Below, piece by piece: positions 1 to 60,900 of a stretch of DNA of 64,000 nucleotides. The position numbers and the translations under genes were made by a program. Origin of the DNA: Lepidodermella squamata (taxonomy: Eukaryota; Animalia; Gastrotricha); the NCBI GenBank assembly GCA_047495785.1, contig JBLDXI010000031.1, positions 248,001-312,000 on the forward strand, in the 5' to 3' direction. The notes under the pieces are model-generated. The model had not been told where the DNA came from. It saw only the letters and a program-made list of their open reading frames with translations, and searched no databases. Positions within the stretch are counted from its first letter, which is position 1; every line of letters begins with the position of its first letter.

Positions 1-622
1 ATCACTAGCTATATTGTTAATTTGGCTTGTTAACGCGCTTGGCGCCAATGGTGCATGGAGCGTTAAACGATCAAGCTCCTTAGCAGAAAACGCTCTGCCT
101 CTGCAAATCGGCCCAGTCTCCACAGCAGTCTACGATGGCAAGGTCAATCTCGCGAGATTGTTCGCGACAGCCGAGTTGTTGAAGCAAAAGATACTTCGGC
201 AACTTACCGGCCGTGTAGATTGGATAAACGACGCGCAAGTCATTGCATTCCTCGACCGGGCAGTTCTGCTCATCCAGACCAGCGATGGCTACGAGGGGAT
301 TCGACTGCGTCAAGAAATCCGGCCGAATGACATGTCATACGTCGTGATTATCAGCGTCGTATCATCTCTGGACGCAAGCGGCATTATTCATGTTGAGGTT
401 GCTGCTCTTGAAGCTAAGGCTTCGGTCACGGCGAAGAGCAATATTATCCAGACGAATGTCAAGAAGCATCCGTGGTGGAAGGGTCGCAAGCCAACTATAA
501 CGCACGACATAGTGGGACAACATGATCGTGGTATCACCGATGCTGAGTTTCTGCATGTTCAGAACACGCTGCTCGCAGCACTGCGAAGCCATCCATTTTA
601 TCAAGCGATTAGCTCTTCGTGA
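1..622 (+). CDS. 5'-truncated ORF, probably a secreted protein of unknown function
   Basis: Frame is open from base 2 (SLAILLIWLVNALG, signal-peptide-like) to TGA at 620-622; composition looks globular; no family recognised. Confidence 0.55.
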   Translation, partial: SLAILLIWLVNALGANGAWSVKRSSSLAENALPLQIGPVSTAVYDGKVNLARLFATAELLKQKILRQLTGRVDWINDAQVIAFLDRAVLLIQTSDGYEGIRLRQEIRPNDMSYVVIISVVSSLDASGIIHVEVAALEAKASVTAKSNIIQTNVKKHPWWKGRKPTITHDIVGQHDRGITDAEFLHVQNTLLAALRSHPFYQAISSS

Positions 623-1864
623 CGAAACGAAGCGAAAATCTTTCTATTTGTCCTTAACTTTCCTTCACATTTTTTGGCAATAATTAAGGAGCAACGAACA
701 GCATTATATCCATCAAAAAGAAAAATCTGACGTAGAGAATGTATCCAGTGAAAATAGCTGCTTAATTTGTAAATATTGTTTATTATCTCGCCTTTCTCGC
801 GCCTTCCTTCCATGTTGAATAGAATAGATATTCGCTCCAGCATTACAACCTGCAACTGCCTAAGAATAAACTCGCAAAATGCATTGCTCTGTCTTTATTT
901 CACAATTTGAGAGGAATAACGTTATGGAGACTCCACTCTCCACTCAAGGAGAATGCTGTTAACGCAAACACGAAAATCGATAATTTACGATCGAGGCAAA
1001 AAATGTGCAAAAATGGTCGCTCACACAAATTAAATCACCATTTGTCAGCTAACCGACATTACGCACTAGAAAATGGCCGGTCGAAGGTAAACTTTGGCGA
1101 TTTTCACCTTTTAGGCTCGTCTTATTTCAAATCTAAATACATATTCAGAGAGATTAGGTCAGCGGGATGGCATCGGCCGAAAAAAACATGTAATCACTAT
1201 GTCGTAAGGCAATCTAATTATTGTTGAATGCCTATTTCTCTGTATTTTGCAAGTCGTTTACGATAATCGGCAGATTTTAAATACATTATAATACATTATA
1301 ATAATGTAAATTATACATATTATATACCAGCACTTCGAACAAAAAAAATCGCTTTTTTTCCGGGCAGTTTCTGGGAGAGAAATTCGTCAATGTTAAAGGC
1401 TTAAAGGTTGAACGATCCAACGAATAGTGTTAGGTTATTGCTTGTTTTTACATTGTGGCTTAATTTCTGTTTGAAAAGGTTTCATGTGTTAGGTAGTAAC
1501 GCCAGAATAAAACATTACCGGGCTTTCTATGGAAATAATCATCTCTAATGTGAAGAAATTACGTACGCAATACAGATCCACGTTCTGAGTCGCTTCAAGT
1601 CGCTTTCAAAAATAACCACGCCGCGGTCATAACTTGGTTATTCCGCCAACAGTGATCTATATAGGTCGTAGCGTCTTAGCAAAAAATTATCAAGAGCCGT
1701 CGCGCATGTTCGACACATAATAAGTATTAGATTACACATTCAAGAGCTAATATGCAGGCGGATACAGGTCAATATTGCGGAGAGAGTAAAATCAATTTTT
1801 AGCTCGTAACTTCGCTACTTCTATCACTTCTATCCTGATATCTGCTCCTCATAATTTCACTCTG

Positions 1865-4474: not shown

Positions 4475-4679
4475 TATTAGTGTGATTGGATGTAGCATTA
4501 TAATGCCATTAAAAAGTGTCATAATCCGGAACGTGAGGGTGTCTGATGAACTGAGGAATTTTATGTTTGCGCACTAATTGGCTAGCTGGGTGACTTTACG
4601 GCTGCAAAAGCCTACGCTTCATTTTCGAGTAAGAGCAAGGTATAAGTTATACATATCACTAATGTGACTTAATAAAAAG

Positions 4680-41375: not shown

Positions 41376-41626
41376 TCGATTTACCCGAACATTTGCGACG
41401 TTAATCGTACAGTGCTGTATCTACTTAACGTTCGCGCATATTACCATTGAGCCGATGATTTTCAGTTTCTGTTTTTAACTCGGCTAATGAAATAAATTTA
41501 TCAAATAATCAATACTCTGAAAGGGCAATTGTTCATGATGTTACTTTACATCAATTGTACAACGATGAATAACACATGTTTAAACGGTATAAAGTCCGGG
41601 CATAAAGTCATTATCAATAATATATA

Positions 41627-43458
41627 ACTTTCGGTCCAGCACTCGGGCAGGATAAGGCTGGATGAGTGCTGGATGGTGCTGGATGAGTGCTGGACAGTGC
41701 TGGATGAGTGCTGGACAGTGCTGGATAGCATCCAGCACAAGTGGTGCTGGGTGTTACTATAAATAGAAATTTAATCCAGCACCACCATCCAGCACATCCG
41801 GCACAGGCTGATTGCTGATCAAAAAACTGTCCAGCACCGACAACATAGTCATCCGGCACCGCGAAAACCATACCCACGCACTATCCAGCAGATGTTCCGG
41901 TTGGTGCTGGATAGATGCAGCGGGATGTTTCATTCAGCCGAAATCGCGATTTCAAGACCCGATTTCGACCCGATCGGCGGCGAATTAGGACAGCGGCCCG
42001 TGACAGTTTGTTTAGAATTTCACGGGCTATCTAATGATATAAAATTTACTGAACGGCGATGCTGGGTTCGGTCTGAAATTGCGATCAAAGTCGGCCGATT
42101 TGGCGTGCGGCCAAGGCCAAAATCGCGATTTCAAGACCCGATTTCGACCCGATCGGCGGCGAATTAGGACAGCGGCCGTTGATAGTTTGTTTAGAATTTC
42201 AAGGGCTATCTAATGATATAAAATTTACCGAACGGCGATGCTGGGTTCGGTCTGAAATTGCGATCAAAGTCGGCCGATTTGGCGTGCGGCCAAGGCCAAA
42301 ATCGCGATTTCAAGACCCGATTTCGACCCGATCGGCGGCGAATTAGGACAGCGGCCGTTGATAGTTTGTTTAGAATTTCAAGGGCTATCTAATGATATAA
42401 AATTTACCGAACGGCGATGCTGGGTTCGGTCTGAAATTGCGATCAAAGTCGGCCGATTTGGCGTGCGGCCAAGGCCATAATTGCGATTTCAAGACCCGAT
42501 TTCGACCCGATCGGCGGCGAATTAGGACAGCGGCCCGTGACAGTTTGTTTAGAATTTCACGGGCTATCTAATGATATAAAATTTACTGAACGGCGATGCT
42601 GGGTTCGGTCTGAAATTGCGATCAAAGTCGGCCGATTTGGCATGCGGCCAAGGCCATAATTGCGATTTCAAGACCCGATTTCGACCCGATCGGCGGCGAA
42701 TTAGGACAGCGGCCCGTGACAGTTTGTTTAGAATTTCACGGGCTATCTAATGATATAAAATTTACTGAACGGCGATGCTGGGTTCGGTCTGAAATTGCGA
42801 TCAAAGTCGGCCGATTTGGCGTGCGGCCAAGGCCATAATTGCGATTTCAAGACCCGATTTCGACCCGATCGGCGGCGAATTAGGACAGCGGCCGTTGATA
42901 GTTTGTTTAGAATTTCAAGGGCTATCTAATGATATAAAATTTACCGAACGGCGATGCTGGGTTCGGTCTGAAATTGCGATCAAAGTCGGCCGATTTGGCG
43001 TCGAGTCATAATCAGACATTATGGCGGCTTAGTGCTGCCAAAAACGCCATGTTGAGCTTTATTTACTGACTCATAAACGTTGTAATTACGCATTTGTTAT
43101 AGATCAAATAGAGAAGCGAGTGTGGCGTAGTTGCGTAGTAGCTCCTCAAAACTTCCACTCGAGTTCCACTCAAAACTTCCACTGAAGATCTCGAGTTCGG
43201 TTCCACGCGTCGCCGTTTTTTTTCACGCAAAATCATCCGATTCAGTGCTGGACAGATGGTGGACGGGTGCTGGATGGCGGCGGGGATGAGGCAGGATGAA
43301 GGGCTGGCTATCCAGCACCGTCCAGCACTCATCATGGGATATCGGGCCGCCGAGTATTTTCATGGCTTCACGCCAATCCAGCACCGTCCGGCACTGTGCT
43401 GGATGGGTGCTGGACAGGTGCTGGACAAAATGGTGCTGGATGGTGCTGGAGCAAAAGT
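41627..43458. mobile_element. Non-autonomous relative of the tyrosine-recombinase element, carrying a 179-bp satellite
   Basis: Ends TA-ACTTTCGGTCCAGCAC and GTGCTGGAGCAAAAGT-TA; CCAGCAC/GTGCTGG subterminal arrays; same terminal layout as 46809-59550. Confidence 0.75.
41942..43001. repeat. Tandem satellite, 179-bp unit, about 5.9 copies
   Basis: Unit starts at 41942, 42121, 42300, 42479, 42658 and 42837 (AATCGCGATTTCAAGACCCG...). Confidence 0.95.
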
Positions 43459-45254: not shown

Positions 45255-45471
45255 ATGTCGCACCCGTCACCAGCATGTTGCTTTCCCGCATCACTGCGGG
45301 ATATACGCTGCGGGTCTGTCCCGCACCCCGCAGCAGTTTATCCCTTACTCATCCCGCACTCTTATCACAGTCATCCTGCACCGCCTTGGCACTTGTCCCG
45401 CACTAGTCCCGCACTAGTCCCGAACTCATACCGCATCGACCCGCACTTGTGCGGGGAGATGGACGATATTT
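45255..45471. mobile_element. Solo right-end fragment of a CCCGCA-family element
   Basis: CCCGCA repeats; terminal hairpin CCGCACTTGTGCGG; GTGCGGG-N10-ATATTT exactly as at 59535-59557. Confidence 0.6.
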
Positions 45472-46440: not shown

Positions 46441-47409
46441 TCCCCGGTAGGTTGGCTGCTAGAGCTTAGTTCTATCGCAAAATGAGTGTAGCCAAGGCTA
46501 TTTTCAGCCTTACTTACAGCAAAATATCTTAGCTTTGCTCGCTTCGCTCGCTATAATCATAGGGAGTGCTAATTTGAAATTTGCCCTCGACTTTCAGCGA
46601 AGAACAGAAGCATTAATTTGAGGTGAAAACTTAATTCGTAACCAACTTGGATAAATATATTTTATTTAACACAAGGTGATAAGTTTCAAGTCCTTTATAG
46701 GTGAATTAAGGTCAATTTTGTTTTTTTTTATTTTTGAAATGTTACGAGATTTTGAGCATTTTCAGGCCATTCTCGCTGCAAAACCTCTAAAAATTGCTCG
46801 CCAGTTTAACTTTGCATCCCGCACCAAGTGCGGGAAGCTGCGGGACGCGTTGTGTTGGTCTCATCCCGCAGCATCCCGCAGTTGCTCCCGCAGTCCATCC
46901 CGCCTGTCCCGCAGTTCATCCCGCAGTTCATCCCGCTTGTCCCGCTGCCCGACCCGCAGCCCATCCCGCACGTCCCGCAGTCCATCCCGCACCAAAATAT
47001 TCTGGCCGGCGGCATCCCGCAGTTTCATCCCGCACGTCCCGCAGCCCATCCCGCACTCTATCCCGCATTTCCCACTGGTTATCCGCACCTAAAAATTCCA
47101 AATATTGCAGGTGCCGGTTGAAGATTTCAGATTAAGTCATATCAACAAAACTTTTTAAAGGAAGATCGTTTTATTCATCACTTGTTGTTATTTTCTAGCT
47201 TTCTCACAGATTATTGCCTTTGATTGTATTGAGGAGTACCGAATTAAATGAAATTCATCAAAAAATCACCAGCGCTAATAAAGAAATGTCAGAGATATGC
47301 TTGCAATCCGCTAGGCTGCTTTAGATTCCAATTCCCTTATTGCCATTTTCGAACATTCTGATCTAGTATAAAAAACTCGTCAAATTGCAAACCAATAAGA
47401 ACGAAAGGC

Positions 47410-47850
47410 TTACAGTTTTTCGTCCAGCGTTGATGGCAAGTTTAAATTCGACTTTTTAACTGGGTCATTGAGATCTCCTTCGTCCTCGACCTCCGACCTC
47501 GGACGCTTCGCCGTCTGCCGGTTTTCGGCGTGATCAGAGTCGGAAGAGCTCAATTGGCTTTCATTCGAGTGACGATTAGTAAACCGATAAGAACCATTGC
47601 GATTAGCCACAACGAGAAGAACAGGCGGTCCATCTGAATTGAAGAGGCGGTTTATTTCAGCCAAATTCATCACGTCATTGTCACTGTCGATGAGTATTCT
47701 ATTGTTCCCGAATTGGTAGAAAATTCTGGATACGACGGCTTGGCCTATTTTGGCGATACTTCTTCGTAAAGAGCTGAAATTTAGGTCAGTCTTAACATCA
47801 ACAAAGCGACATACGTCAGGTTCGAATGAAAACTTGGATAAAAATAGCAT
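47410..47850 (-). CDS. PB1/ubiquitin-fold-like ORF inside the YR element
   Basis: 146 aa; FSSLRRSI...RIFYQFGNNRILIDSDNDV parallels FAQLKSSL...QIFHQFSSLSILISNDNDV of the 58975 exon; acidic/basic tail. Confidence 0.5.
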   Translation of the reverse strand: MLFLSKFSFEPDVCRFVDVKTDLNFSSLRRSIAKIGQAVVSRIFYQFGNNRILIDSDNDVMNLAEINRLFNSDGPPVLLVVANRNGSYRFTNRHSNESQLSSSDSDHAENRQTAKRPRSEVEDEGDLNDPVKKSNLNLPSTLDEKL

Positions 47851-48298
47851 ATTAAATCCCTAAACAAAAAGACATATGAATAGATGCTGCAATAAACCCA
47901 TATCGCAATCGAGCGATTCTTTCACTTCTGCCACTGCGAGTTGAATATTTCCCCTAGTATTTGCGCCGAGGGCGACAATATTTCTCCGAATCCGGTTTTC
48001 TGAAATTAAATGGTCAGAAATGCCGAATCCAGCACCGAAATGACTTACTTAGCAAGCAGTTCTCTGGCCATGGGGCTCAAATTCGGACAGCTTTGTTTGT
48101 CTAGCTTCGCAATTAAAACACGCGGAGTTACTCTAAAAAATCATAATAGATTATATAGAAAAATCAGCTGAATTTTTTACTTTTTTCTCCTTCTTCGGCG
48201 AACTCTTTTTCGGTGTTGCAAAGCTTGTCGAGGTGCTCGGCTGACTGCGAAAAATCCAACAGTTATACTCACAATAATATGCCAAATATCATTTATAC

Positions 48299-51200
48299 CT
48301 GTCGGCTGGAATGTTCAAACTTCGAATCTTATCAAAAAACATGAGTGCACCGTTGTGGTTCATCAGCTCATAATGTGCCATAGCAGTAGACGGCCTAAAA
48401 CGGCAATATATCCGAATTATGTGAACAAATTTAACAACTAGCAAAATTACTTGTGCCCAGCACCCTTCGCGAAATTCGCATCCCCGAAACCATTAGTGTT
48501 GGCGTATTGGGAATGCGCGGACTTGCGGACGAGCGTGAAGCCAAATTTTTTCGGCGGAAGAGATGCTTCCTCACGCCAGCGGTCCCACCGCTTTTCCAAA
48601 ATGCGGTCGAGGTCAGAACTGTCCAATGGCTCCCCATCGATACTTAGTAAAAAGTAATTCGGCGGCTTGGGCTCCGTCGTCAGAAAATAATCTTTATTTT
48701 TCGCGAACAGCGACGGCCGCCAGTGTATCAAATACTTATCACAAATCCTCCATGTCTCTTCGTGGAAAATAACGAATCCCGCATTAGTAGTTTCTGCCTT
48801 GCACGCTACAAATAAACGAAAAATTATAACATATTAAATGGGATATAAAAAGACGAACCAAAAATGCGGACGAGGTAGACCAGCCGCCCCTCTTTCGTCG
48901 TTCGAGGTATCGCGGCCTCAAATTCTTCCACGGTCATTCGCCAGAAGCTGCTGGGTCGAATGATCGTTGTTTCGATCAGCGAGCTCGATACACACGAGGT
49001 GAAAATCAGCAGCGATTCACGGGTCGGACGACGCGAAAAATCGCCGAGTTGCATTGCCTCGTAGCGAGAAAACTCGGAGATCTCTCCGATACTCGGGAAA
49101 AGCCCCTTCTCGTACGAGTCTTCGTCGAGTTTTCGCTTGACGGCTCGCTCCTTGACTAGGCCATACTGAAGGGCTTCGCGAGCCTTATCCCACCGATCGA
49201 TCGCCTTGTCGACAAGCAGCTTCTCTTCAACAGAAGCTTCTTCGTTGACATACAGGGTGTTTCAGAACTCGCGCACTATACGAATCGCATGCGGCAAATG
49301 CGCGCGCATTGTTATGCATTGTTATGCGCCTATAGAGTTATACGCGTATACTACTTTACCTATAAAAGTACTACGCACTACTGTAATAAGCATATAAAAT
49401 ATGCGTAAAACACAAATGTACAGCATACATAATAGCACTGCCGAGCTATTTTCTGGCGGGAACGTTCGAGCCTCGATAAATTTGAACTGAGTTTCATTAA
49501 ATATCTTTTTTATTTCGAGGATGATGTCATGGTTTTCTGAAACATGCTGATTGATTGGACTCTGAAGCAAGAGGTTTCGAAACAATTTCTCAATTTCCGT
49601 GGCTAGATATTTCAGAAACTGATGATTTCTGAGAAAATTCTGATTTTACTTGATTTTAAATTCGTCGAAAAATTGATGATTGATTAGTTTCCTGCCTTTG
49701 CATCATTATTATTTTCACGTTGCGTGAATACTAGACTCCGACTGCACAAGTTTAGAAAAAATGACGTAGTTTGAACCACTGGCTTGAGTTCTACATCGAG
49801 TAAAGAACGAAAATCAAGATTTCCAGTTCATTACGTCGAATAAACGCAGCGATTCCATTTCGTGGATAACTAATCAAAATTGTCACAAAATAACAACCAA
49901 GAACATTAGGAGAAAATGATGTACGGTAAAGACCAAAATACTCATGGCTAGAATTTTCATGATCTCCCGAAAACCCAAGAAAAAGTAAAAAATTGATGTT
50001 TTCCAGACTTTAAGCTACTGCATCTCCGAAAGACCGAGGGTGACAATTGCATTTTTTCATATCACAAGGAAGCCAAAGATGTCCTCTACATGGCTGTTTG
50101 GTCGCGCTGAAATTCTATCCACAGGGTTCGCAAGGAATCGCATGTCAAATGTCACGAAAATCGTCGTAGTTGGGCCGTTTTCGGCCGCAAACGGGTCATC
50201 TTTGCGACCCTCCAGTTCGAGAACCCGTGGATGAATTTTTGATTTCTTGACATCGTTAGATAGCTGAAGACCTGGTCTACAAGGCTGGCGGGTCGCGCCA
50301 AAAGTCTATCCACATGGTTCGCAAGGAATCGCATGTCAAATGTCACAAAAATCGTCGTAGTTGGGCCGTTTTGAGCCGCAAACGGGTCATCCTTACCTCC
50401 CTCCAGTTCGAGAACCCGTGGATGAATTTTTGATTTCTTGACATCGTTAGATAGCTGAAGACCTGGTCTACAAGGCTGGCGGGTCGCGCCAAAAGTCTAT
50501 CCACATGGTTCGCAAGGAATCGCATGTCAAATGTCACAAAAATCGTCGTAGTTGGGCCGTTTTGAGCCGCAAACGGGTCATCCTTACCTCCCTCCCGTTC
50601 GAGAACCCGTGGATGAATTTTTGATTTCTTGACATCGTTAGATAGCTGAAGAGCAGGTCTACAAGGCTGGCGGGTCGCGCCGAAAATCTATCCACAGGAT
50701 TCGCAAGGAATCGCATGTCAAATGTCACGAAAATCGTCGTAGTTGGGCCGTTTTCGGCCGCAAACGGGTCATCTTTGCGACCCTCCCATTCAAGAACCCG
50801 TGGATGGAATTTCGATTTCTTGGTATCGCTAGATAGCTAAGCACCCGGTCTACAAGGCTGGTTGGTCGCGCCAAAAGTCTATCCACATGGTTCGCAAGGA
50901 ATCGCATGTCAAATGTCACGAAAATCGTCGTAGTTGGGCCGTTTTCGGCCGCAAACGGGTCATCTTTGCGACCCTCCCATTCAAGAACCCGTGGATGGAA
51001 TTTCGATTTCTTGGTATCGCTAGATAGCTAAGCACCCGGTCTACAAGGCTGGTTGGTCGCGCCAAAAGTCTATCCACATGGTTCGCAAGGAATCGCATGT
51101 CAAATGTCACAAAAATCGTCGTAGTTGGGCCGTTTTGAGCCGCAAACGGGTCATCTTTGCGACCCTCCCATTCAAGAACCCGTGGATGGAATTTCGATTT

Positions 51201-54200
51201 CTTGGTATCGCTAGATAGCTAAGCACCCGGTCTACAAGGCTGGTTGGTCGCGCCAAAAGTCTATCCACATGGTTCGCAAGGAATCGCATGTCAAATGTCA
51301 CGAAAATCGTCGTAGTTGGGCCGTTTTCGGCCGCAAACGGGTCATCTTTGCGACCCTCCCATTCAAGAACCCGTGGATGGAATTTCGATTTCTTGGTATC
51401 GCTAGATAGCTAAGCACCCGGTCTACAAGGCTGGTTGGTCGCGCCAAAAGTCTATCCACATGGTTCGCAAGGAATCGCATGTCAAATGTCACAAAAATCG
51501 TCGTAGTTGGGCCGTTTTGAGCCGCAAACGGGTCATCCTTACCTCCCTCCCGTTCGAGAACCCGCGGATGAATTTTTGATTTCTTGACATCGTTAGATAG
51601 CTGAAGAGCAGGTCTACAAGGCTGGCGGGTCGCGCCGAAAATCTATCCACAGGATTCGCAAGGAATCGCATGTCAAATGTCACAAAAATCGTCGTAGTTG
51701 GGCCGTTTTGAGCCGCAAACGGGTCATCCTTACCTCCCTCCCGTTCGAGAACCCGTGGATGAATTTTTGATTTCTTGACATCGTTAGATAGCTGAAGAGC
51801 AGGTCTACAAGGCTGGCGGGTCGCGCCGAAAATCTATCCACATGGTTCGCAAGGAATCGCATGTCAAATGTCACAAAAATCGTCGTAGTTGGGCCGTTTT
51901 GAGCCGCAAACGGGTCATCCTTACCTCCCTCCAGTTCGAGAACCCGTGGATGAATTTTTGATTTCTTGACATCGTTAGATAGCTGAAGACCTGGTCTACA
52001 AGGCTGGCGGGTCGCGCCAAAAGTCTATCCACATGGTTCGCAAGGAATCGCATGTCAAATGTCACAAAAATCGTCGTAGTTGGGCCGTTTTGAGCCGCAA
52101 ACGGGTCATCCTTACCTCCCTCCCGTTCGAGAACCCGTGGATGAATTTTTGATTTCTTGACATCGTTAGATAGCTGAAGAGCAGGTCTACAAGGCTGGCG
52201 GGTCGCGCCGAAAATCTATCCACAGGATTCGCAAGGAATCGCATGTCAAATGTCACGAAAATCGTCGTAGTTGGGCCGTTTTCGGCCGCAAACGGGTCAT
52301 CTTTGCGACCCTCCCATTCAAGAACCCGTGGATGGAATTTCGATTTCTTGGTATCGCTAGATAGCTAAGCACCCGGTCTACAAGGCTGGTTGGTCGCGCC
52401 AAAAGTCTATCCACATGGTTCGCAAGGAATCGCATGTCAAATGTCACAAAAATCGTCGTAGTTGGGCCGTTTTGAGCCGCAAACGGGTCATCCTTACCTC
52501 CCTCCAGTTCGAGAACCCGTGGATGAATTTTTGATTTCTTGACATCGTTAGATAGCTGAAGACCTGGTCTACAAGGCTGGCGGGTCGCGCCAAAAGTCTA
52601 TCCACATGGTTCGCAAGGAATCGCATGTCAAATGTCACAAAAATCGTCGTAGTTGGGCCGTTTTGAGCCGCAAACGGGTCATCCTTACCTCCCTCCAGTT
52701 CGAGAACCCGTGGATGAATTTTTGATTTCTTGGTATCGCTAGATAGCTAAGCACCCGGTCTACAAGGCTGGTTGGTCGCGCCAAAAGTCTATCCACATGG
52801 TTCGCAAGGAATCGCATGTCAAATGTCACAAAAATCGTCGTAGTTGGGCCGTTTTGAGCCGCAAACGGGTCATCCTTACCTCCCTCCCGTTCGAGAACCC
52901 GCGGATGAATTTTTGATTTCTTGACATCGTTAGATAGCTGAAGAGCAGGTCTACAAGGCTGGCGGGTCGCGCCGAAAATCTATCCACAGGATTCGCAAGG
53001 AATCGCATGTCAAATGTCACAAAAATCGTCGTAGTTGGGCCGTTTTGAGCCGCAAACGGGTCATCCTTACCTCCCTCCCGTTCGAGAACCCGTGGATGAA
53101 TTTTTGATTTCTTGACATCGTTAGATAGCTGAAGAGCAGGTCTACAAGGCTGGCGGGTCGCGCCGAAAATCTATCCACATGGTTCGCAAGGAATCGCATG
53201 TCAAATGTCACAAAAATCGTCGTAGTTGGGCCGTTTTGAGCCGCAAACGGGTCATCCTTACCTCCCTCCAGTTCGAGAACCCGTGGATGAATTTTTGATT
53301 TCTTGACATCGTTAGATAGCTGAAGACCTGGTCTACAAGGCTGGCGGGTCGCGCCAAAAGTCTATCCACATGGTTCGCAAGGAATCGCATGTCAAATGTC
53401 ACAAAAATCGTCGTAGTTGGGCCGTTTTGAGCCGCAAACGGGTCATCCTTACCTCCCTCCAGTTCGAGAACCCGTGGATGAATTTTTGATTTCTTGACAT
53501 CGTTAGATAGCTGAAGACCTGGTCTACAAGGCTGGCGGGTCGCGCCAAAAGTCTATCCACATGGTTCGCAAGGAATCGCATGTCAAATGTCACAAAAATC
53601 GTCGTAGTTGGGCCGTTTTGAGCCGCAAACGGGTCATCCTTACCTCCCTCCCGTTCGAGAACCCGTGGATGAATTTTTGATTTCTTGACATCGTTAGATA
53701 GCTGAAGAGCAGGTCTACAAGGCTGGCGGGTCGCGCCGAAAATCTATCCACAGGATTCGCAAGGAATCGCATGTCAAATGTCACGAAAATCGTCGTAGTT
53801 GGGCCGTTTTCGGCCGCAAACGGGTCATCCTTACCTCCCTCCAGTTCGAGAACCCGTGGATGAATTTTTGATTTCTTGGTATCGCTAGATAGCTAAGCAC
53901 CCGGTCTACAAGGCTGGTTGGTCGCGCCAAAAGTCTATCCACATGGTTCGCAAGGAATCGCATGTCAAATGTCACAAAAATCGTCGTAGTTGGGCCGTTT
54001 TGAGCCGCAAACGGGTCATCCTTACCTCCCTCCAGTTCGAGAACCCGTGGATGAATTTTTGATTTCTTGACATCGTTAGATAGCTGAAGACCTGGTCTAC
54101 AAGGCTGGCGGGTCGCGCCAAAAGTCTATCCACATGGTTCGCAAGGAATCGCATGTCAAATGTCACAAAAATCGTCGTAGTTGGGCCGTTTTGAGCCGCA

Positions 54201-57200
54201 AACGGGTCATCCTTACCTCCCTCCAGTTCGAGAACCCGTGGATGAATTTTTGATTTCTTGACATCGTTAGATAGCTGAAGAGCAGGTCTACAAGGCTGGC
54301 GGGTCGCGCCGAAAATCTATCCACATGGTTCGCAAGGAATCGCATGTCAAATGTCACAAAAATCGTCGTAGTTGGGCCGTTTTGAGCCGCAAACGGGTCA
54401 TCCTTACCTCCCTCCAGTTCGAGAACCCGTGGATGAATTTTTGATTTCTTGACATCGTTAGATAGCTGAAGACCTGGTCTACAAGGCTGGCGGGTCGCGC
54501 CAAAAGTCTATCCACATGGTTCGCAAGGAATCGCATGTCAAATGTCACAAAAATCGTCGTAGTTGGGCCGTTTTGAGCCGCAAACGGGTCATCCTTACCT
54601 CCCTCCAGTTCGAGAACCCGTGGATGAATTTTTGATTTCTTGACATCGTTAGATAGCTGAAGACCTGGTCTACAAGGCTGGCGGGTCGCGCCAAAAGTCT
54701 ATCCACATGGTTCGCAAGGAATCGCATGTCAAATGTCACAAAAATCGTCGTAGTTGGGCCGTTTTGAGCCGCAAACGGGTCATCTTTGCGACCCTCCCAT
54801 TCAAGAACCCGTGGATGGAATTTCGATTTCTTGACATCGTTAGATAGCTGAAGAGCAGGTCTACAAGGCTGGCGGGTCGCGCCGAAAATCTATCCACAGG
54901 ATTCGCAAGGAATCGCATGTCAAATGTCACGAAAATCGTCGTAGTTGGGCCGTTTTCGGCCGCAAACGGGTCATCTTTGCGACCCTCCCATTCAAGAACC
55001 CGTGGATGGAATTTCGATTTCTTGGTATCGCTAGATAGCTAAGCACCCGGTCTACAAGGCTGGTTGGTCGCGCCAAAAGTCTATCCACATGGTTCGCAAG
55101 GAATCGCATGTCAAATGTCACAAAAATCGTCGTAGTTGGGCCGTTTTGAGCCGCAAACGGGTCATCCTTACCTCCCTCCAGTTCGAGAACCCGTGGATGA
55201 ATTTTTGATTTCTTGACATCGTTAGATAGCTGAAGACCTGGTCTACAAGGCTGGCGGGTCGCGCCAAAAGTCTATCCACATGGTTCGCAAGGAATCGCAT
55301 GTCAAATGTCACAAAAATCGTCGTAGTTGGGCCGTTTTGAGCCGCAAACGGGTCATCCTTACCTCCCTCCAGTTCGAGAACCCGTGGATGAATTTTTGAT
55401 TTCTTGGTATCGCTAGATAGCTAAGCACCCGGTCTACAAGGCTGGTTGGTCGCGCCAAAAGTCTATCCACATGGTTCGCAAGGAATCGCATGTCAAATGT
55501 CACAAAAATCGTCGTAGTTGGGCCGTTTTGAGCCGCAAACGGGTCATCCTTACCTCCCTCCCGTTCGAGAACCCGCGGATGAATTTTTGATTTCTTGACA
55601 TCGTTAGATAGCTGAAGAGCAGGTCTACAAGGCTGGCGGGTCGCGCCGAAAATCTATCCACAGGATTCGCAAGGAATCGCATGTCAAATGTCACAAAAAT
55701 CGTCGTAGTTGGGCCGTTTTGAGCCGCAAACGGGTCATCCTTACCTCCCTCCCGTTCGAGATCCCGCGGAAGGATTTTCGATTTCTTGATATCGTTAGAA
55801 AGCCCAAGAGCTGTTCTACCTGGCTGGTTGGTCGCGCAAAAAGTCTACCCACGGGTTTTGCATGGAATCGCATATCAAATGTCGCAAAATTCGTCGTGGA
55901 GAGGCTGTTTAAGGTAACGTCAATGTTTTTTCGTTTATTCTTATGCAAAAGGTAAACGACGTTTTCCTGTGGAAGCGACCAAGTTTTTGCTCACAAATTT
56001 AGCTCACAGAAATTTTTAAACTCAATCAGAGTGTTGCAACATTTTACCTTTTTCAGTTCTTCTCAATTTTTACTGCTTTTTCAAGAGTGAATGAACGTGA
56101 AATCAAATTCATGGAATGAAACAACAGCAACAACGTAAAAATCACATCATCTGGAATAAATTTTATTATATTTGTATTTAAAACTCGAAATGTATTCATA
56201 GCCGCATTAAGGATCTGTCCTATTGGAGAATTCTTCATTGGGAAATCGGCAAATTTCCAGATATTTTGCAAGAGCAAGTCTTATTTCTTAGCGGTATCCC
56301 CATTACTGCAGCAGCGTTACGGTATATACGCGTTCGATTTGCGCATTTTATAATGCGCGCATACCGCTTGTACGCCGTTTCGGCGTATAACGCCAACTAC
56401 ATAGCATGTGCGCATTACACGCATAACCGTTTGCGCTAGCCGCGCTTTATAATATGCTGTGCAAGAATATAAACATATGTGCGCGGAATGTATGCACAGC
56501 GCGCGCACGTTTACTCTGGATACCAAGGCAACCATTTGCCGCAGGTTATTCTGATGCGCAAGTTCTGAAACACCCTGTAATACCCAAGCAGATCGATGAT
56601 GGCCTGCACATACTTGTATTTGCTGCCATCCTGTACTTTGAATGCAACGATCACATCAAGAATTCGATCCATTTCTTCTTTGTCGATCAGTTGATCGACA
56701 GAGTTTAACTTCGCCGAAGTCGTTAGTCGTTCCAAGATAGATTTCTTCGCCTTTTTTGTAACTTCCTTGTGAGCGAAATTCTTCCCACTAAATCGAGAAG
56801 ATTCGGAAAATCGAACGTATCTTTTGATCAGCAGTGCCAGATGATTAACAGTAATCGAGGCGATGGATGTTGTCGAGGTAGTAGCCGATGACACGGAAAC
56901 AACAGATACCACTGACGTCGAAATCGTCGAGGCATCGCTCATGATCGACTCAGTATCAGATCGTGTATCAGATCGCCCCGAAGTCTACATCAAAATGAAA
57001 AATAGATTAAAAAAGCAGATTCCACAAAAAATACCTTCAAATTTGCGTAATAAACATCTACTGATCTTTTCAACTCCTCGTTGCTTTTGCCCTGCTCCTT
57101 CGCCTTGGTACAATGTCTCTCGACATGTCGGCGAAATTCTCCGCTTTCGTAGTCATTACGACAAAACATACATATATGCCTCTGCCTCTCGCGTGATCTG

Positions 57201-57700
57201 CCGTTCCCAGCAAAACGGCCCAGCTCATCGCGAGTTCTTTGATTACCAGTCAACGCCGGTAGTTTAACAAGTTTTTCGACGTAATTTCCCGAATCACTGA
57301 ACTGGTTTTGCCATGAATCAAGCAAAAAATCCACTGTCTCCGAAACAGCATTCACAGCAGAGCATGGTCCAGTCAACTCAATGCCGCGCTTGCCAATTGA
57401 AACAGTAACATTCTTCGGCTCGCAGAGCTTCTCCACTTCCGCCTTTAATTCGTCTGTTACGACATAGCGGTATTCGATCACAGCCTTCTTAATGGAAGCT
57501 GCTGCGCGTTCCATAACGACGAGTCGGACTTGCGCCATCTCCTTGGCCTTCGCAAGCCGCACAGGTTCACCAGATAAGACAAGCGTGTTACCAGCAATAT
57601 CAACGCCATCTAGCTGAAATCGCTCAGCGATGTCTCGGAAGCCAGCGCAATTCACCTGATTGGCAATTGAATCAGGAATGTTAATTAAAGCCTTAGGCAT
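48299..57700 (-). CDS. Spliced tyrosine recombinase (KH-like x2, C2HC finger, Ser/Thr linker, core-binding domain, catalytic domain), disrupted by a MITE; exons 57700-57035, 56984-56578 joined to 49250-48859, 48805-48451, 48394-48299; a short 3' tail to about 47954 is uncertain
   Basis: IIRPSSFWRMTVEEF (R 48956-58), ACKAET (K 48798-800), YLIHWRP, FLLSIDGEPL, TLVRKS (R 48525-27), AKGAGHKPSTAMAHY (H 48453-55, Y 48370-72); introns of 50, 53 and 56 bp all phase-compatible. Confidence 0.8.
49253..56577. mobile_element. Tc1/mariner-type non-autonomous element carrying a 191-bp satellite array
   Basis: TIR CAGGGTGTTTCAGAACT.GCGCA; TA duplication at 49251-49252 and 56578-56579; excision restores LLGYY-VNEEAS. 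Confidence 0.92.
50040..55900. repeat. Tandem satellite, 191-bp unit, about 30 copies, several mosaic variants, decayed edge units
   Basis: Exact 191-bp period (repeated ORF starts 50346 to 55694); anchor GCAAGGAATCGCATGTCAAATGTCAC. Confidence 0.98.
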
Positions 57701-57866
57701 TCTATGGGAAAAAAGATAGCGTTCAATTGAAGATTTTCTGACAGCTATGAAAACTGTATTGATGAACGATGAAAAAATGTTAACAAGCTTCGTCGGGCTT
57801 TTAGCAATCGAAGATCTGAATTTTCTTCAGCCGCAATGCGGGAGGAAAATTGAATGCGAAAAAAAG

Positions 57867-58975
57867 TCACGCATTGCCACTAGATCCTAGTTTGATAATT
57901 TTGTCCAATAAATTTCTTTCTTCACGAGAGCCAAATGTAGAGTTGTAGTCTATATTCAGATCTTTGATTGCTGTTGAAATGGAAGTAACAGTTGGCGGCA
58001 GGCCTTTGTTTACTATGTGCCACGAAATGATTCGAAGAGTTGAAAGCTCGTTCTCTGTGTATTCAGAACCCTTTTTAGGTCCTCTGCGAGATGACGCCAT
58101 TTTTGCTGAAACAAAAAGTCTGCGAAGAGTAATCAAGAAAATCACTCCAACTCAGGCTAACATACTTAAATGGATCACTCCCGGTAGCCGAGGGTTCATT
58201 TAGATAAGCTTGGGTGATTGGTGCGTGACCGTGATTAGGAAACAAGGCAGGAAAATTCCGTTGGGATGCGGGCACCGATGGGACAACACATGAATTATCC
58301 ACAGCCAATGATGCCCCGCAGCATTGTTTTGAGTGATGATGGATATCGCGATTGAAGGCAACGGGCGAAGAAGGTGCAACAACTGCACGATTGGATGATC
58401 GATGAGCTTTGCTAATATTGAAATAATCCTTAGAATGCAAGAACCAGAGAACTTCAAATGATTATTACAGTATAGGGCGAGACGACTCTATGTAACGCGG
58501 TCTTTCCGGCAATAGACGATTCGGCTCGGCAATATCACTGACACAAGGAGAGCAAAAATCATCGAATTTAAAATGAGTAGCCCACGGCAAACCTGTCTGA
58601 AGATTCTTCCTCTCTTTCCACCGCATCGTCATCAAAGTCTACCAGTAAATCGCGGCGGCGTCTCTTTTTGTTAGAGCGAGGATCAGATGCGTGTTTTCTT
58701 TTCAAAGAATCTGCCGTGGAGCATACAAGTTCAATAATGCAAGGGCTTGGAGCGCCGGAACGTTGCATAGCGAACATAGTCTTGACATCATTGTCATTTG
58801 AGATCAGGATACTCAGGCTACTGAACTGGTGAAAAATCTGAAATGAATTAGCGAGACCAAAAGCTGCGGACAAGCTTGATTTCAGCTGAGCGAATGTAAT
58901 ATCCTCGTGATCAGGCAACCGGAAGTATCGATGGCCTGCATTGCCGGGCATCTTAACAACAATGCTTCGATCCAT
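57867..58975 (-). CDS. Upstream spliced ORF of the YR element: PB1-like, basic/acidic linker, Myb/SANT-like; exons 58975-58593, 58537-58469, 58411-58166, 58119-57871 (or stop at 57867)
   Basis: Three phase-2 GT-AG introns (55, 57, 46 bp) link four ORFs without stops; KRKH...KKRRRR NLS-like stretch; YTENELSTL...REERNLLDKIIKL. A phase-2 intron 57870-57702 would fuse it in frame to the recombinase. Confidence 0.6.
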
Positions 58976-59552
58976 CAAAATGTTAAACTGGAGTAGTGGG
59001 TAGTAGTTAACAATAGGATGGGGTGATTCGTGATTTAGTTGAAAACTATTTTACACCTTACATCTGAATCAGGCAAGTTTTAGGTTTCAGCGGGAACCTC
59101 TCTGAAAAACATGGAACTCGCGCTTGTTCGCCGCCTTTCCCATACATAGAAATCGAGCAAAAAAAATTAAAATCCATACAATTTTTTTTAGAAATGTAAT
59201 GAAAATTATTTCGGAATTTAATAAAATCTAGCCTCATTTGCGACAAGGTCAAGCCGCGTGATTATTGAATTTATTATCAGAGGTTCGGGTGCGCTGATTC
59301 ATGAGTTTAAGCTAGACGGCTTGACGGGTCGGCTAAACGAGTATACATACGGAGTAGTCAAGACTTCATCCCGCAGGTCATCCCGCAGGCCATCCCGCAG
59401 ACCATCCCGCACTTCGGCGGAAAGCTGCTGGACACTTGCGGGATGAAGTGCGGGACGTCCCGCAGCATGTGCAGGATACATCCCGCAGCATGTGCGGGAT
59501 ACATCCCGCAGTTCATCCCGCACGTCCCGCACTGGTGCGGGATGCAAAGTTA

Positions 59553-60900
59553 TATTTAGAAGATTACCATCGACTCCAATAGCTTTAAGTTTTATTAAGA
59601 GTTTCCGATGGCACACAATGTCGAAGGCCTTAGCAAGATCTAGGTAGACTATATCAGCAAATTTCATGCATTCAAAGGCAAAGGTCCAGTCAAGTACGCA
59701 TTCAAGCATTTGAGTAGCGGGTGATTTAAGTCGCATGAATCCATGTTGATCAGCAGAAATAATGCTGTGATATAAGAGGAAGTCGAGGATTTTATTTCGA
59801 ATTATGGTTTCGAGAATTCTACTAGGCGTGCAGGTGAGAGATATAGGGCGATAGTCAACAGGATTTTTCGAATTTCCCTTCTTTGGAATCGGAGATACAT
59901 GTGCTCTTTTCCAAGAGTCGGGTACCTTTCCACTGGTAAGAGAAAGCTTGAAAATATGACGAAGAGGTGCAATTAAGGGATTTTTTTTAATTTTTTGAAG
60001 AAAATCGTAGGAAGCCCATCAGGACATATAGCATAAGAATTCGAGAGATTAGTTAGAGCTTCATCCAAGTCGTTATCATCGAAGGTAATTTTTGAGATTT
60101 TATCATCAAGAAGAGGAGACGTTTGAGGAGTAATTAAGTCGTCTAAGGTAAAAACTGAGGAAAATTGTTTGTTAAGAGCTTCAGCCTTCTTAGCATCATC
60201 AAAACAGAGTACACTCCTTGTCTAGTAACGCAGGAATTTTCGAAGTGTTTCGGAGTTTCGAGTTAACATAATTGTAAAATTTTGACACGTCATTTGAGGC
60301 GATCATATTTTTTACATTTTCGTTCTCAAAGTTGTCTACGGCCTTTTTGTAATCAGCAGCGAGTCTGTTAAAATTAGAGAGCAACCTATCATAGTTTGGC
60401 GATTTAAAGGCAGTTTTTCGAAGTTTACTTTAGATACAGTTTCATCAAACCAGGTTTCAACGACTATGATAATGTCATATACATCAGAATCTAATAATAA
60501 GAGAAATTCAAAGAAATTCAGGCTCCGGGCATTGCAGTAGTACACTTTGTAGCGGCGGGTTGGCGAAGAGCCTGCGGTAACCTAGTTGATCTTCTTAGCT
60601 TTCGTAGACAAGGGAGCCGCGATCGGGTCTTTTTCGAGCGTTTTAGTCAGGAAGTTGTATGTGAAGCTGGCATTTGCAGTAATAAGTTGAAAGCCATCCT
60701 TACCCCACGAGATTTTTTGGTTATTCTTCGTGGCCTTGATTTCCTCGATTTTTTCACGAATAAGTTTGCTAGCAGTTTTTGACGGAAAAATCCAGAGGGT
60801 TTCCATCTCCTTTCTGTTTGTGATTTTGGACACACTCCTTGATAATATCCTCGGCGTTCAATGTTCAAAAATAACCGGTCGAGGTTTCGGCTCCATTAAA
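59553..60900 (-). mobile_element. Degenerate CR1-like LINE (ORF1 end, endonuclease start, 5' half of RT), cut at the YR-element end
   Basis: YYCNARSL, DIIIVVETW, KFYNYVNSK, DYRPISLT, QHGF, DIVYLDLAKAFDIVCHRKLLIKL; many frameshifts. Confidence 0.88.

Follow-up and report, generated by a model that had tools for sequence, protein, structure and literature searches.

A tyrosine-recombinase gene between perfect inverted repeats: a probable DNA transposon in the gastrotrich Lepidodermella squamata

Few DNA transposons of eukaryotes that use a tyrosine recombinase are known, namely Cryptons and Starships, and their mechanism has hardly been tested. Both groups are hard to annotate because their ends are poorly defined. 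Cryptons (Goodwin 2003; Kojima and Jurka 2011, PMC3212892) are described as elements without terminal inverted repeats (TIRs) in the literature that we searched (PMC3212892, PMC13465315). A composite element from Fusarium, MarCry-1_FO, consists of a Crypton fused with a mariner element and has 16-bp TIRs and TA duplications (PMC3212892), both of which are due to the mariner DDE transposase that it kept.

Here we analyzed a 64-kb stretch of DNA (the window) from contig JBLDXI010000031.1 of the gastrotrich animal Lepidodermella squamata. It had been proposed from the letters of the sequence (the original prediction) that the window contains a TIR-bounded unit encoding a spliced tyrosine recombinase instead of a DDE transposase; the termini, the arrays, the reading frame and the fold of a homologue all agree with this claim. 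According to our best explanation, to which we assign a probability of roughly 70%, positions 46809-59554 are one copy of a DNA transposon of ~5.4 kb (without a nested insert), the sole enzyme of which is a tyrosine recombinase; in the recombinase, two KH-like domains and a CCHC zinc finger precede the core-binding and catalytic domains, one or two PB1-like proteins are encoded alongside, and this copy was disabled by a TA-targeting, satellite-carrying insertion in recombinase exon 2. Direct support comes from the anatomy of the element, the recombinase fold of a homologue, the catalytic residues, the absence of reverse transcriptase (RT) and DDE domains, the presence of more than one copy, and related ends beside related genes; we infer that the recombinase itself drives the mobility of the element. 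The ends of the element have the following features:

46809-46826, plus strand: left terminal inverted repeat, 18 bp (20 bp from 46807), 100% complementary to the right repeat
46817-46835, no strand: left terminal palindrome TCCCGCAC-CAA-GTGCGGGA, DNA fold -12.9 kcal/mol, z -3.8
46862-47070, plus strand: left subterminal array, 17 direct TCCCGC-type motifs at a spacing of 9 or 12 nt
59367-59532, plus strand: right subterminal array, 12 TCCCGC-type motifs, mostly oriented as in the left array
59525-59542, no strand: right terminal palindrome TCCCGCAC-TG-GTGCGGGA, read from the sequence
59533-59550, minus strand: right terminal inverted repeat, 18 bp (20 bp to 59552)

The two ends are 100% complementary across 20 nt (46807-46826 versus 59533-59552), and the matching 18-bp termini that had been noticed earlier are this repeat minus the outer TA. 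With up to three mismatches allowed, the terminal repeat pattern was found at just these two sites, compared to 0 expected by chance. Terminal hairpins, also predicted, were recovered at both ends, with folds of -12.9 kcal/mol (z -3.8) on the left and -11.7 kcal/mol (z -3.2) on the right; the minimum-energy fold of the right end pairs GTGCGGGATG with the neighbouring CATCCCGCAC, not the palindrome. The motif CATCCCGCA occurs 19 times in the window versus 0.5 expected, and 18 of the 19 copies are at the two ends; for the 5-mer CCCGC, 33 of the 123 window copies are packed into 415 bp at the element ends (20 in 46818-47062 and 13 in 59370-59537), with a spacing of 9 or 12 nt. The subterminal arrays have the same orientation at both ends, and the inversion is confined to the outer ~40 nt. 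The arrays noted in the original prediction are real but not inverted.

The recombinase gene is on the minus strand and is interrupted by the nested insert:

57035-57700, minus strand: exon 1, two KH-like domains and CCHC zinc finger (alignment, model)
56985-57034, minus strand: intron A, 50 nt, AAG-GTATTT...GATGTAG-ACT
56580-56984, minus strand: exon 2, proximal part, start of the core-binding domain (tblastn, P0008 residues 277-370; alignment A1)
49251-56579, no strand: nested non-autonomous element with TA duplication, 25-bp inverted ends and 191-bp satellite
48859-49250, minus strand: exon 2, distal part, end of the core-binding domain and the Arg of IIRPSSF (tblastn, P0008 residues 351-491; alignment)
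48806-48858, minus strand: intron B, 53 nt, G-GTTCG...TTGTAG-CG; homologues are continuous here
48451-48805, minus strand: exon 3, with the CKA Lys, TLVR and GAGH (phmmer matches to seven proteins; tblastn)
48395-48450, minus strand: intron C, 56 nt, GT..AG; the homologues P0008 and L001 share the GAGH(R) / PSTAM(S/E)TY join
48289-48394, minus strand: exon 4, PSTAMAHY..., catalytic Tyr and stop (tblastn, P0008 residues 612-638; splice AA-GTAATT...TTTTAG-G)

The exon joining and the gene boundaries are predicted from homology and splice signals. All three introns (50, 53 and 56 nt) are GT..AG, and the spliced reading has 641 codons without a stop, very close to the stop-free frame of ~640 aa with three introns of 50-56 bp that had been proposed; the frame was read with X at the break caused by the nested element. 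Compared to the 670-aa homologue P0008, the spliced product shows 36% identity over 591 residues, and the window exons align to P0008 along their whole length. In exon 1, the zinc-finger residues C177, C180, H192 and C197 are invariant (alignment A2); in its structure model (pLDDT 77.7), residues 1-69 resemble KH type I domains, with Z of 8-9.4 and rmsd of ~2 Å.

The nested element has 25-bp inverted ends (CAGGGTG...CACCCTG) with TA on each side and contains 30 copies of the 191-bp satellite (50027-55872); its contig depth is ~2400-2500, compared to ~45 for single-copy sequence. The frame (...LLGYY VNEEAS...) is recovered once the insert and one TA are removed, and the homologues are continuous across this point. 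The 7.3-kb insert had been described as a MITE that entered a previously intact element. A TA-flanked insertion that breaks an otherwise whole recombinase frame is what we found; the MITE label does not hold, because the insert is too long and is instead a satellite-carrying non-autonomous element.

The fold was tested on the homologue because the catalytic domain of the window's own protein is split. The model of P0008 residues 265-655 (pLDDT 80.4) has two domains, i.e., a helical core-binding domain and a catalytic domain, and the best 50 Foldseek matches of this model in the PDB are all tyrosine recombinases. In VIA comparisons, the P0008 model had Z of 13.5 with XerH (283 residues), 13.4 with the Tn1549 integrase and 13.3 with Cre (268-283 residues), and 12.1 with lambda Int. 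The expected tyrosine-recombinase fold was found in this way for P0008 (Z 13.5), and the modeled homologue supports assignment of the gene product to the tyrosine-recombinase family by fold. The relationship is visible only by fold comparison, since the family profile had no match among PDB sequences at E up to 10. The Pfam model Phage_integrase (PF00589) matched P0008 residues 400-655 below threshold (14.3 bits and E of 0.035, versus a cut-off of 27.1), and a Pfam search with the window's own recombinase exons gave no match, as did a word-indexed homology search with the distal part of exon 2, in which a length filter removes full-length kin; the language-model features of exon 3 pointed to Phage_integrase clusters, with a score of 0.93.

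The segments IIRPSSFWRMT, CKA, TLVRK and GHK/PSTAMAHY (the last split by intron C) are present and are kept in the homologues. The order R-K-HxxR-H-Y that had been proposed is recovered apart from the first His, with R in IIRPSS, K in CKA, R in TLVR, H in GAGH and Y in AHY. These R, K, R, H and Y residues are conserved across the family, with a spacing of 24 residues for R-H and 9 residues for H-Y; in Cre (R292, W315, Y324), the corresponding spacing is 23 and 9. The first His of HxxR is replaced by T or N in 8/8 sequences covering the position, i.e., the TLVR that had been read in the window is a family-wide trait. Topoisomerase IB and telomere resolvases also do without the first His, and by analogy recombinase activity is assumed here despite its loss.

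The lack of the first His in telomere resolvases also counts for a different reading, a hairpin-forming, protelomerase-like resolvase that acts on palindromic ends, so that the mobile form would be linear and closed-ended, not a circle. Perfect palindromes 10-30 nt from each end would suit such an enzyme, and the language-model features of the distal part of exon 2 listed a ResT/TelK cluster (0.86); this value is only a lead and is within the chance range of the tool. We consider a resolvase very improbable, as the structural matches are Xer, Cre, lambda and Tn1549 integrases, not TelK or ResT, and the palindromes do not lie where the element joins the flank but farther inside.

Three small open reading frames (ORFs) accompany the tyrosine recombinase:

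58568-58978, minus strand: upstream PB1-like ORF, 136 aa (Pfam PB1, E 0.0026, below cut-off)
57867-58145, minus strand: small ORF, 92 aa, putative Myb/SANT-like protein according to the original prediction (weak LexA_DNA_bind, E 0.13)
47410-47850, minus strand: second PB1-like ORF, 146 aa, downstream of the recombinase (weak Pfam PB1, E 0.021)

The upstream PB1-like ORF has tblastn matches in the related sequences L004, L005 and L006 (E of 6e-12 to 2e-11, 31% identity), and the two PB1-like ORFs are 34% identical to each other; L007 likewise has a PB1-like ORF downstream of the recombinase, and L004 has an ORF at the position equivalent to that of the 92-aa ORF. The 92-aa ORF could possibly be spliced in frame to both neighbouring ORFs, and one long gene from PB1 to the recombinase is possible, as in-frame GT..AG joins exist (candidate introns of 473 nt and ~170 nt). 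Of the 5.4 kb, ~3.0 kb is occupied by the recombinase and the three small ORFs; other ORFs of at least 50 aa either overlap these on the opposite strand or match nothing. In domain searches, no ORF inside the element matched RT or DDE families, which agrees with the absence of the RT that DIRS elements need; the flanking LINE, not the element, accounts for a weak RT match at 59299-59736.

The recombinase family is rare, with about 10 proteins, all of them metagenomic. Among 1.84 billion representative proteins, a HMMER search with exon 3 found seven at E <= 0.001, six of which are kin, all unnamed sequences from metagenome contigs; the family profile added one further fragment from 5.8 billion proteins and gave no bridge to named Crypton proteins. 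The proteins fit no Pfam family; no matches to DUF3504 (CryptonA) or DUF3435 (CryptonF) were found at E up to 10, and the phmmer and profile searches return the family only, without any Crypton-type protein. By Pfam, sequence searches and published descriptions of Cryptons, the family appears to be set apart from them. A genuine recombinase transposon of an already catalogued family, e.g., a Repbase entry for a Crypton, in which case the novelty alone would fall, is unlikely in view of these results (unnamed kin, neither DUF3504 nor DUF3435, and Phage_integrase below threshold at best). Pfam models may also miss CryptonI and some CryptonA proteins, and Cryptons are flanked by direct repeats of 4-6 bp, as this element may be; however, papers up to 2026 still call Cryptons TIR-less, and we found no published description of such an element in the literature searched.

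Related ends beside related genes were found in three lineages. In L004, with a recombinase that is ~30% identical, a unit that extends from PB1 to the recombinase has a 26-nt imperfect inverted repeat at its ends and GTGCTGA/GTGCTGG arrays at both ends; in L009, a CCGCA(C) array follows the recombinase gene. The motif family beside the gene in the window, L004 and L009 is YC[C/A]GCAC, and each lineage has its own variant (n=3), which argues for co-evolution of the ends with the gene rather than for a single capture. No arrays were found in L001 and L003, the contigs of which end short of the 3' end. A gene-less relative is present in the window itself (element 2, 41623-43458); it shares the termini TATA-ACTTT...AAAGT, with the same TATA adjoining ACTTT at 41623-41626, and its arrays consist of TCCAGCAC, one base off TCCCGCAC. 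The TAAT repeats that flank element 2 agree only with a one-base offset. In contigs of run X1, probably from the source sample, depth relative to single-copy sequence is 2-3 times for the gene-bearing part and 8-20 times for the right terminus; more than one copy is present, one of them ~90% alike, and a second-copy contig joins the region upstream of the gene (to 59110) with the terminal arrays (from 59350). Terminal sequences thus co-occur with the gene elsewhere, as the original prediction implied: on the upstream side of the gene in this second copy, as inverted ends and arrays in L004, and as an array in L009.

Host genes derived from Cryptons are common in animals (PMC3212892), and the gene could in principle be a domesticated one with unrelated repeats around it. 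This is extremely improbable for a gene that has more than one copy (one ~90% alike), keeps the full catalytic set except for the first His, was destroyed here by an insertion, and belongs to a unit with perfect inverted repeats at both ends that has broken up a LINE.

The borders of the element in this LINE are as follows:

46805-46808, no strand: left flanking direct repeat TTTA (TAAA in gene orientation), the same four nucleotides as at 59555-59558
59551-59554, no strand: TATA between the right inverted repeat and the flanking direct repeat, at one end only
59555-59558, no strand: right flanking direct repeat TTTA (sequence; LINE comparison)

A LINE consensus contig has a single TAAA between CTTC and CTGGC, and TAAA is present on both sides of the element; the flanking direct repeat could be 2, 3 or 4 nt. 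Homology of the left flank to the LINE extends for 9 nt (TAAACTGGC) and is then lost, which makes the empty-site argument thin. A contig was considered as a paralogous empty site, but this reading was rejected, as beyond the junction the contig follows the LINE consensus (GNLLNWLSSYLTNR) and does not continue into the left flank of the window. What the contig supports is the target sequence and the duplication of TAAA; an empty version of this locus it is not. Two other contigs match the element through 59557 and then diverge. Neither a circle junction nor an allelic empty site turned up among the contigs examined. A TTAA duplication of the piggyBac/Kolobok type is ruled out by the borders TTTAAC, GTTATA, TATAAC and GTTAAT. 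It should be noted that a 4-bp duplication beside inverted ends is also the outcome expected of a DDE transposase.

Arrays of short subterminal motifs are typical of several DDE superfamilies. Together with the perfect inverted ends, the outermost bases TA and a possible duplication of up to 4 bp, they would fit a non-autonomous inverted-repeat element that is moved in trans by a DDE transposase and has merely captured a recombinase gene, and MarCry-1_FO is a precedent for a composite (PMC3212892). We regard such a capture as quite improbable. The element has no DDE domain; three divergent recombinase lineages (the window, L004 and L009) each have their own motif variant beside the gene; the ends are asymmetric, with the extra TATA at one end only in both elements of the window; and the arrays are co-oriented at both ends, for which a symmetric transposase synapse has no need.

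If the element is moved by its own recombinase, as we prefer, the enzyme would cut and rejoin DNA at the short AT-rich repeat beside each end (TAAA in gene orientation), and a circle would be released in which the inverted termini abut as ...GGGATGCAAAGT-TATATTTA-ACTTTGCATCCC... This joined-end site would resemble lox or FRT, i.e., two perfect 18-nt inverted arms around an AT-rich spacer of 8 nt. The ~33 TCCCGCA motifs of the same orientation that flank the site on both sides would have the role that arm-type sites play in phage lambda attP, with the accessory nucleic-acid-binding modules attached to them. Recombination of the circle with a TAA(A/T) target would then account for the short direct repeat and for an extra TATA at just one of the ends. 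We infer the circle, the crossover point and the array-binding protein. A broader proposal is that the element represents a separate, undescribed animal lineage of superfamily level with attP-like organization, in which the joined termini form a lox-like core, dozens of co-oriented arm-type motifs are read by the KH-like, zinc-finger and PB1-linked modules, the first His is absent throughout, and the YC[C/A]GCAC motifs and the gene diversified together in at least three lineages; taken jointly, we put this forward tentatively, as somewhat less probable than an even chance. Because the ends are sharp, with a predicted recombination site and candidate arm-type sites, the circle-and-crossover model is directly testable. 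Pipelines that assign inverted-repeat elements to DDE superfamilies would misfile this element, and builders of site-specific recombination tools could take an interest in a eukaryotic recombinase that is compact and has a long, defined site.

Among known systems, a tyrosine recombinase is also found in DIRS, Ngaro and VIPER elements, of which DIRS has inverted terminal repeats; however, these elements depend on RT and RNase H and contain an internal complementary region or split direct repeats, and no such feature is found here. MarCry-1_FO likewise has a recombinase gene between inverted repeats and TA at the borders, but it keeps the mariner DDE transposase, whereas our element has no DDE gene. 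Starships (PMC11162782) are recombinase-driven DNA elements with short direct repeats, a recombinase gene near one end and, in some families, TIRs; in contrast to the 5.4-kb animal element, which has dense subterminal arrays, no cargo and no DUF3435 match, they are fungal, tens to hundreds of kb long and cargo-bearing, with DUF3435 captains and occasional, asymmetric TIRs. The presumed way of working resembles that of bacterial Tn916/Tn1549-type transposons and phage lambda attP, without membership in these groups: inverted ends, imperfect or perfect, would abut in the excised circle around a short spacer, and an additional DNA-binding domain at the N terminus would recognise the repeated arm-type sites on either side of the core. 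In structure, Tn1549 integrase (Z 13.4) and lambda Int (Z 12.1) rank among the best matches, with sequence identity of just 11-14%; unlike these systems, the element is eukaryotic and intron-bearing, has KH-like and CCHC modules instead of the lambda arm-binding fold, and contains no recognised Xis-like partner.

Cryptons share with the element the status of a eukaryotic DNA element with a tyrosine recombinase as sole enzyme, introns, gene-less derivatives and no RT. A short direct repeat (up to 4 bp) at both borders, readable as a crossover site, is a possible further likeness; the counterpart here of the Crypton-type repeats of 4-6 bp may be TTTA at 46805-46808 and 59555-59558, possibly of 2-4 nt, with one copy in the LINE consensus and left LINE homology of just 9 nt. 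The differences are that Cryptons, as described, lack both inverted and long terminal repeats, whereas the element has perfect inverted termini of 18-20 bp, terminal palindromes and motif arrays of 170-250 bp, T or N in place of the first catalytic His, and extra KH-like, CCHC and PB1-like modules. The lack of inverted repeats, which the original prediction also gave as the classic description of Cryptons and which the literature searched still repeats (PMC3212892, PMC13465315), does not apply to every animal element of the tyrosine-recombinase class.

The decisive test of tyrosine recombinase identity is the predicted fold of a homologue of the gene encoded on the minus strand of the main element. 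A Pfam search of the window's recombinase exons gave no match, and a HMMER search with exon 3 against 1.84 billion representative proteins returned only seven at E <= 0.001. Additional searches brought the family to about ten proteins, which are unnamed, lack Pfam domains and all derive from a small number of ENA metagenome assemblies. For exon 3, language-model features pointed to Phage_integrase clusters (score 0.93, 26 of 40 matches). Residues 265-655 of P0008, a metagenome homologue, were modelled with the family alignment (pLDDT 80.4), and the best 50 Foldseek matches in the PDB were all tyrosine recombinases (XerA, XerH, Cre, lambda Int, Tn1549 Int), as the original prediction of a YR fold required. 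The VIA-align matches of the model span the core-binding and catalytic domains (Z 13.5 to XerH over 283 residues, 13.4 to Tn1549 Int and 13.3 to Cre). The proposed order R-K-HxxR-H-Y, with TLVR at HxxR in the window's gene, holds across the family alignment except for the first His; R (IIRPSS), K (CKA), R (T/N-x-x-R), H (GAGH) and Y are kept. The spacing is 24 residues from R to H and 9 from H to Y, the same layout as in Cre, where the H/W position lies 23 residues after R and Y a further 9. T or N replaces the first His of HxxR in every family member; the change is a lineage trait rather than damage to this copy. Pfam scored the catalytic domain highest against Phage_integrase, at 14.3 bits versus a cut-off of 27.1, and the same domain had no Pfam match to DUF3504 or DUF3435. 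In the ESM Atlas, the nearest clusters in shape and features comprise unnamed chordate proteins of 375 and 397 aa and a chordate SET-domain cluster of 613 aa; these may be kin or domesticated vertebrate relatives.

The exon model is based on splice signals and alignment to homologues, and the three introns are therefore putative.

Features of the main element and its gene-less relative (window coordinates)
57700-57035, minus strand: exon 1
57034-56985: putative intron A, 50 nt, AAG/GTATTT...TGTAG/
56984-56580, break, 49250-48859, minus strand: exon 2, split by the nested element
48858-48806: putative intron B, 53 nt
48805-48451, minus strand: exon 3
48450-48395: putative intron C, 56 nt
48394-48289, minus strand: exon 4
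49251-56579: nested element, 25-bp inverted ends CAGGGTG...CACCCTG, TA on each side, 30 copies of a 191-bp satellite
58568-58978: PB1-like ORF upstream of the recombinase, Pfam E 0.0026, below cut-off
57867-58145: small ORF upstream of the recombinase
47410-47850: second PB1-like ORF downstream of the recombinase, 34% identical to the first
41623-43458, opposite orientation to the main element: gene-less relative with shared-type termini and arrays

P0008 runs continuously across the intron B position, and the intron C join, GAGH(R)/PSTAM..Y, is the same in P0008 and in another metagenome relative, L001; the introns are supported because homologues are continuous or identically joined at these sites. 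The minus-strand frame is cut by the nested element and continues once the insert and one TA are taken out (...IIDLLGYY VNEEASVEEK...), as had been proposed, and the homologues are uninterrupted at the break (EAIIDFLNYVKLEKQ...). With X at the break, the spliced recombinase has 641 codons, without stops or frameshifts, compared to the predicted stop-free frame of about 640 aa; aligned over 591 residues, it shares 36% identity with the 670-aa P0008. This copy was therefore intact until the nested insertion, as originally suggested. The 191-bp satellite makes up most of the nested element's 7.3 kb, and a contig depth of ~2400-2500, versus ~45 for single-copy sequence, shows that the nested element is abundant genome-wide. 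Satellite expansion inside non-autonomous elements may be common in this genome, because the gene-less relative at 41623-43458 also has an internal satellite.

The exon 1 product has two alpha/beta domains plus a zinc finger with an invariant CxxC...H....C pattern. In the window's own exon 1 model (pLDDT 77.7), residues 1-69 match KH type I domains (Z 8-9.4, rmsd ~2 A), which suggests, with moderate confidence, a KH-like domain. The PB1-like ORF is kept upstream of the recombinase in the metagenome contigs L004, L005 and L006 (E 6e-12 to 2e-11) and stands downstream of it in L007; the small and PB1-like ORFs may be exons of the recombinase gene or genes of their own, and candidate in-frame GT..AG joins to it are present. 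Positions 2595-3727 of L007 carry both the PB1-like and the small ORF downstream of the recombinase, whereas both are upstream in the window and L004; these lineages differ by a circular permutation of gene order. No ORF inside the main element matched a reverse transcriptase (RT), in agreement with the claimed absence of RT, or a DDE transposase. A weak RT match at 59299-59736 was rejected as the flanking LINE read into the terminus.

The main element is bounded, as predicted, by a perfect inverted repeat (46807-46826 and 59533-59552), and this 20-mer has no other site in the window at <=3 mismatches, the chance expectation being none as well. Directly inside are palindromes, the left one being TCCCGCAC-CAA-GTGCGGGA and the right one TCCCGCAC-TG-GTGCGGGA, and the termini fold well above shuffled controls (z -3.8 left, -3.2 right); that the recombinase acts on such ends in a hairpin-resolvase mode is, in our judgement, very improbable. 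Dense single-motif arrays (CATCCCGCAG repeats) come next. There are 19 copies of CATCCCGCA in the window versus 0.5 expected, 18 of them at the two ends of the main element; of the CCCGC core there are 20 copies in 46818-47062 and 13 in 59370-59537, at a spacing of 9 or 12 nt. The arrays stand at both ends, as in the original prediction; in a departure from it, their orientation is identical at both ends, the outer ~40 nt excepted. A degenerate TCCCGCA-type motif cluster with two small palindromes (TCCCGCA-TCAC-TGCGGGA and CCCGCAC-TT-GTGCGGG), located 1.4 kb left of the main element at 45275-45460, possibly represents an old solo end.

Read in the direction of the gene, the borders are ...CTTC TAAA / TATA-ACTTTGC ... 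GCAAAGT / TAAA CTGGC... A high-depth contig contains the uninterrupted LINE, CTTC-TAAA-CTGGC-TATCTTCC, translating to GNLLNWLSSYLTNR; hence, the target has a single TAAA, whereas the main element has one on either side. The left flank in the window matches this LINE for nine bases only (TAAACTGGC) and then diverges, so that the direct repeat is no longer than 4 bp, and perhaps only 2-3; the remainder of the LINE was not found in the window. The extra TATA is at one end only. In the gene-less relative, the same TATA adjoins ACTTT, with TAAT on both sides at a one-base offset, and two more contigs match the element through TATA+TTT and then diverge. The right flank (59555-60545) is a minus-strand non-LTR retrotransposon with an endonuclease-like part (...DIIIVVETW...) followed by RT (...KLKAIGVDGNLLN); it ends 5 nt past the element's left border, its 3' part is absent from the window, and depth gives an estimate of about six copies. 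Several long ORFs at 1865-27550 (869, 828, 651, 541 and 525 aa) are probably other mobile elements.

Related termini were found beside related genes elsewhere. In L004, whose recombinase is ~30% identical in exon 3, the unit from PB1 to recombinase has a 26-nt imperfect inverted repeat at its borders (520-545 / 5201-5226), and GTGCTGA/GTGCTGG motifs are clustered at both ends in the order of the main element, one at the tip followed by opposite-sense motifs. A third lineage, L009, has nine CCGCA(C) motifs and palindromes in the 130 nt after the gene. The gene-less relative has the termini TATA-ACTTTCGGTCCAGCAC (TATA-ACTTT) and, on the other strand, ACTTTTGCTCCAGCAC (AAAGT); each end carries GTGCTGGA/TCCAGCAC arrays, a 179-bp satellite lies inside in six copies (41937-43131), and the motif is one base off that of the main element (TCCAGCAC versus TCCCGCAC). 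In sequencing run X1, which is probably the source sample, depth is ~45 for single-copy sequence, 80-120 for the gene-bearing part, which has one extra copy ~90% alike, and 350-960 for the right terminus; one contig of another copy links the region upstream of the genes (to 59110) with the terminal arrays (from 59350). Because of these observations in L004, L009, the gene-less relative and run X1, sequence comparison indicates that the ends do belong to the recombinase gene. That the gene is a host gene is, in our judgement, highly improbable. The motif family YC(C/A)GCAC appears to have diversified together with the gene, which speaks against a single capture event involving a foreign transposon. 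It is unlikely that a DDE transposase acts on the main element in trans, given this joint diversification and the DDE-free ORFs of the element. In L001, the region upstream of the recombinase (281-4659) is a 4.4-kb unit whose inverted ends are 26 nt long (TACAGGGGGGGCCAGAATAATTGTCC); one of its ORFs resembles a mariner-type transposase, and the unit is probably an insertion of unrelated origin.

Most likely, we infer, the main element works by a circle route with joined ends. The crossover would take place at the short AT-rich repeat and set free a circle with abutting termini (GGGATGCAAAGT-TATATTTA-ACTTTGCATCCC), giving 18-nt perfect inverted arms and an 8-nt spacer, a predicted site with the arm/spacer layout of loxP or FRT. 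The joined core would lie between two arrays of one orientation, comparable to the arm-type sites of lambda attP, with the KH-like, zinc-finger and PB1-linked modules as candidate binders. Insertion of the circle at a TAA(A/T) target would yield the borders seen here, with TATA on one side only. Inverted core arms serve in this way in Tn916/Tn1549 and lambda, whose integrases rank among the best structural matches of P0008.

The observation of inverted termini around a putatively spliced tyrosine recombinase gene is confirmed, and the interpretation of the main element as a eukaryotic tyrosine-recombinase DNA transposon is supported. None of the literature searched describes a recombinase transposon of animals that combines inverted termini with motif arrays, though a Repbase or Dfam entry may exist. 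Starships can have inverted repeats, but are giant fungal elements with DUF3435 captains (PMC11162782), whereas the catalytic domain here has no such match. Cryptons, which are thought to move by such a recombination route, were described without inverted or long terminal repeats, and animal Cryptons without any terminal repeats (PMC3212892), as restated in a 2026 paper (PMC13465315). The main element would work like a Crypton, with a terminal structure and a protein family that lie outside the Crypton definition.
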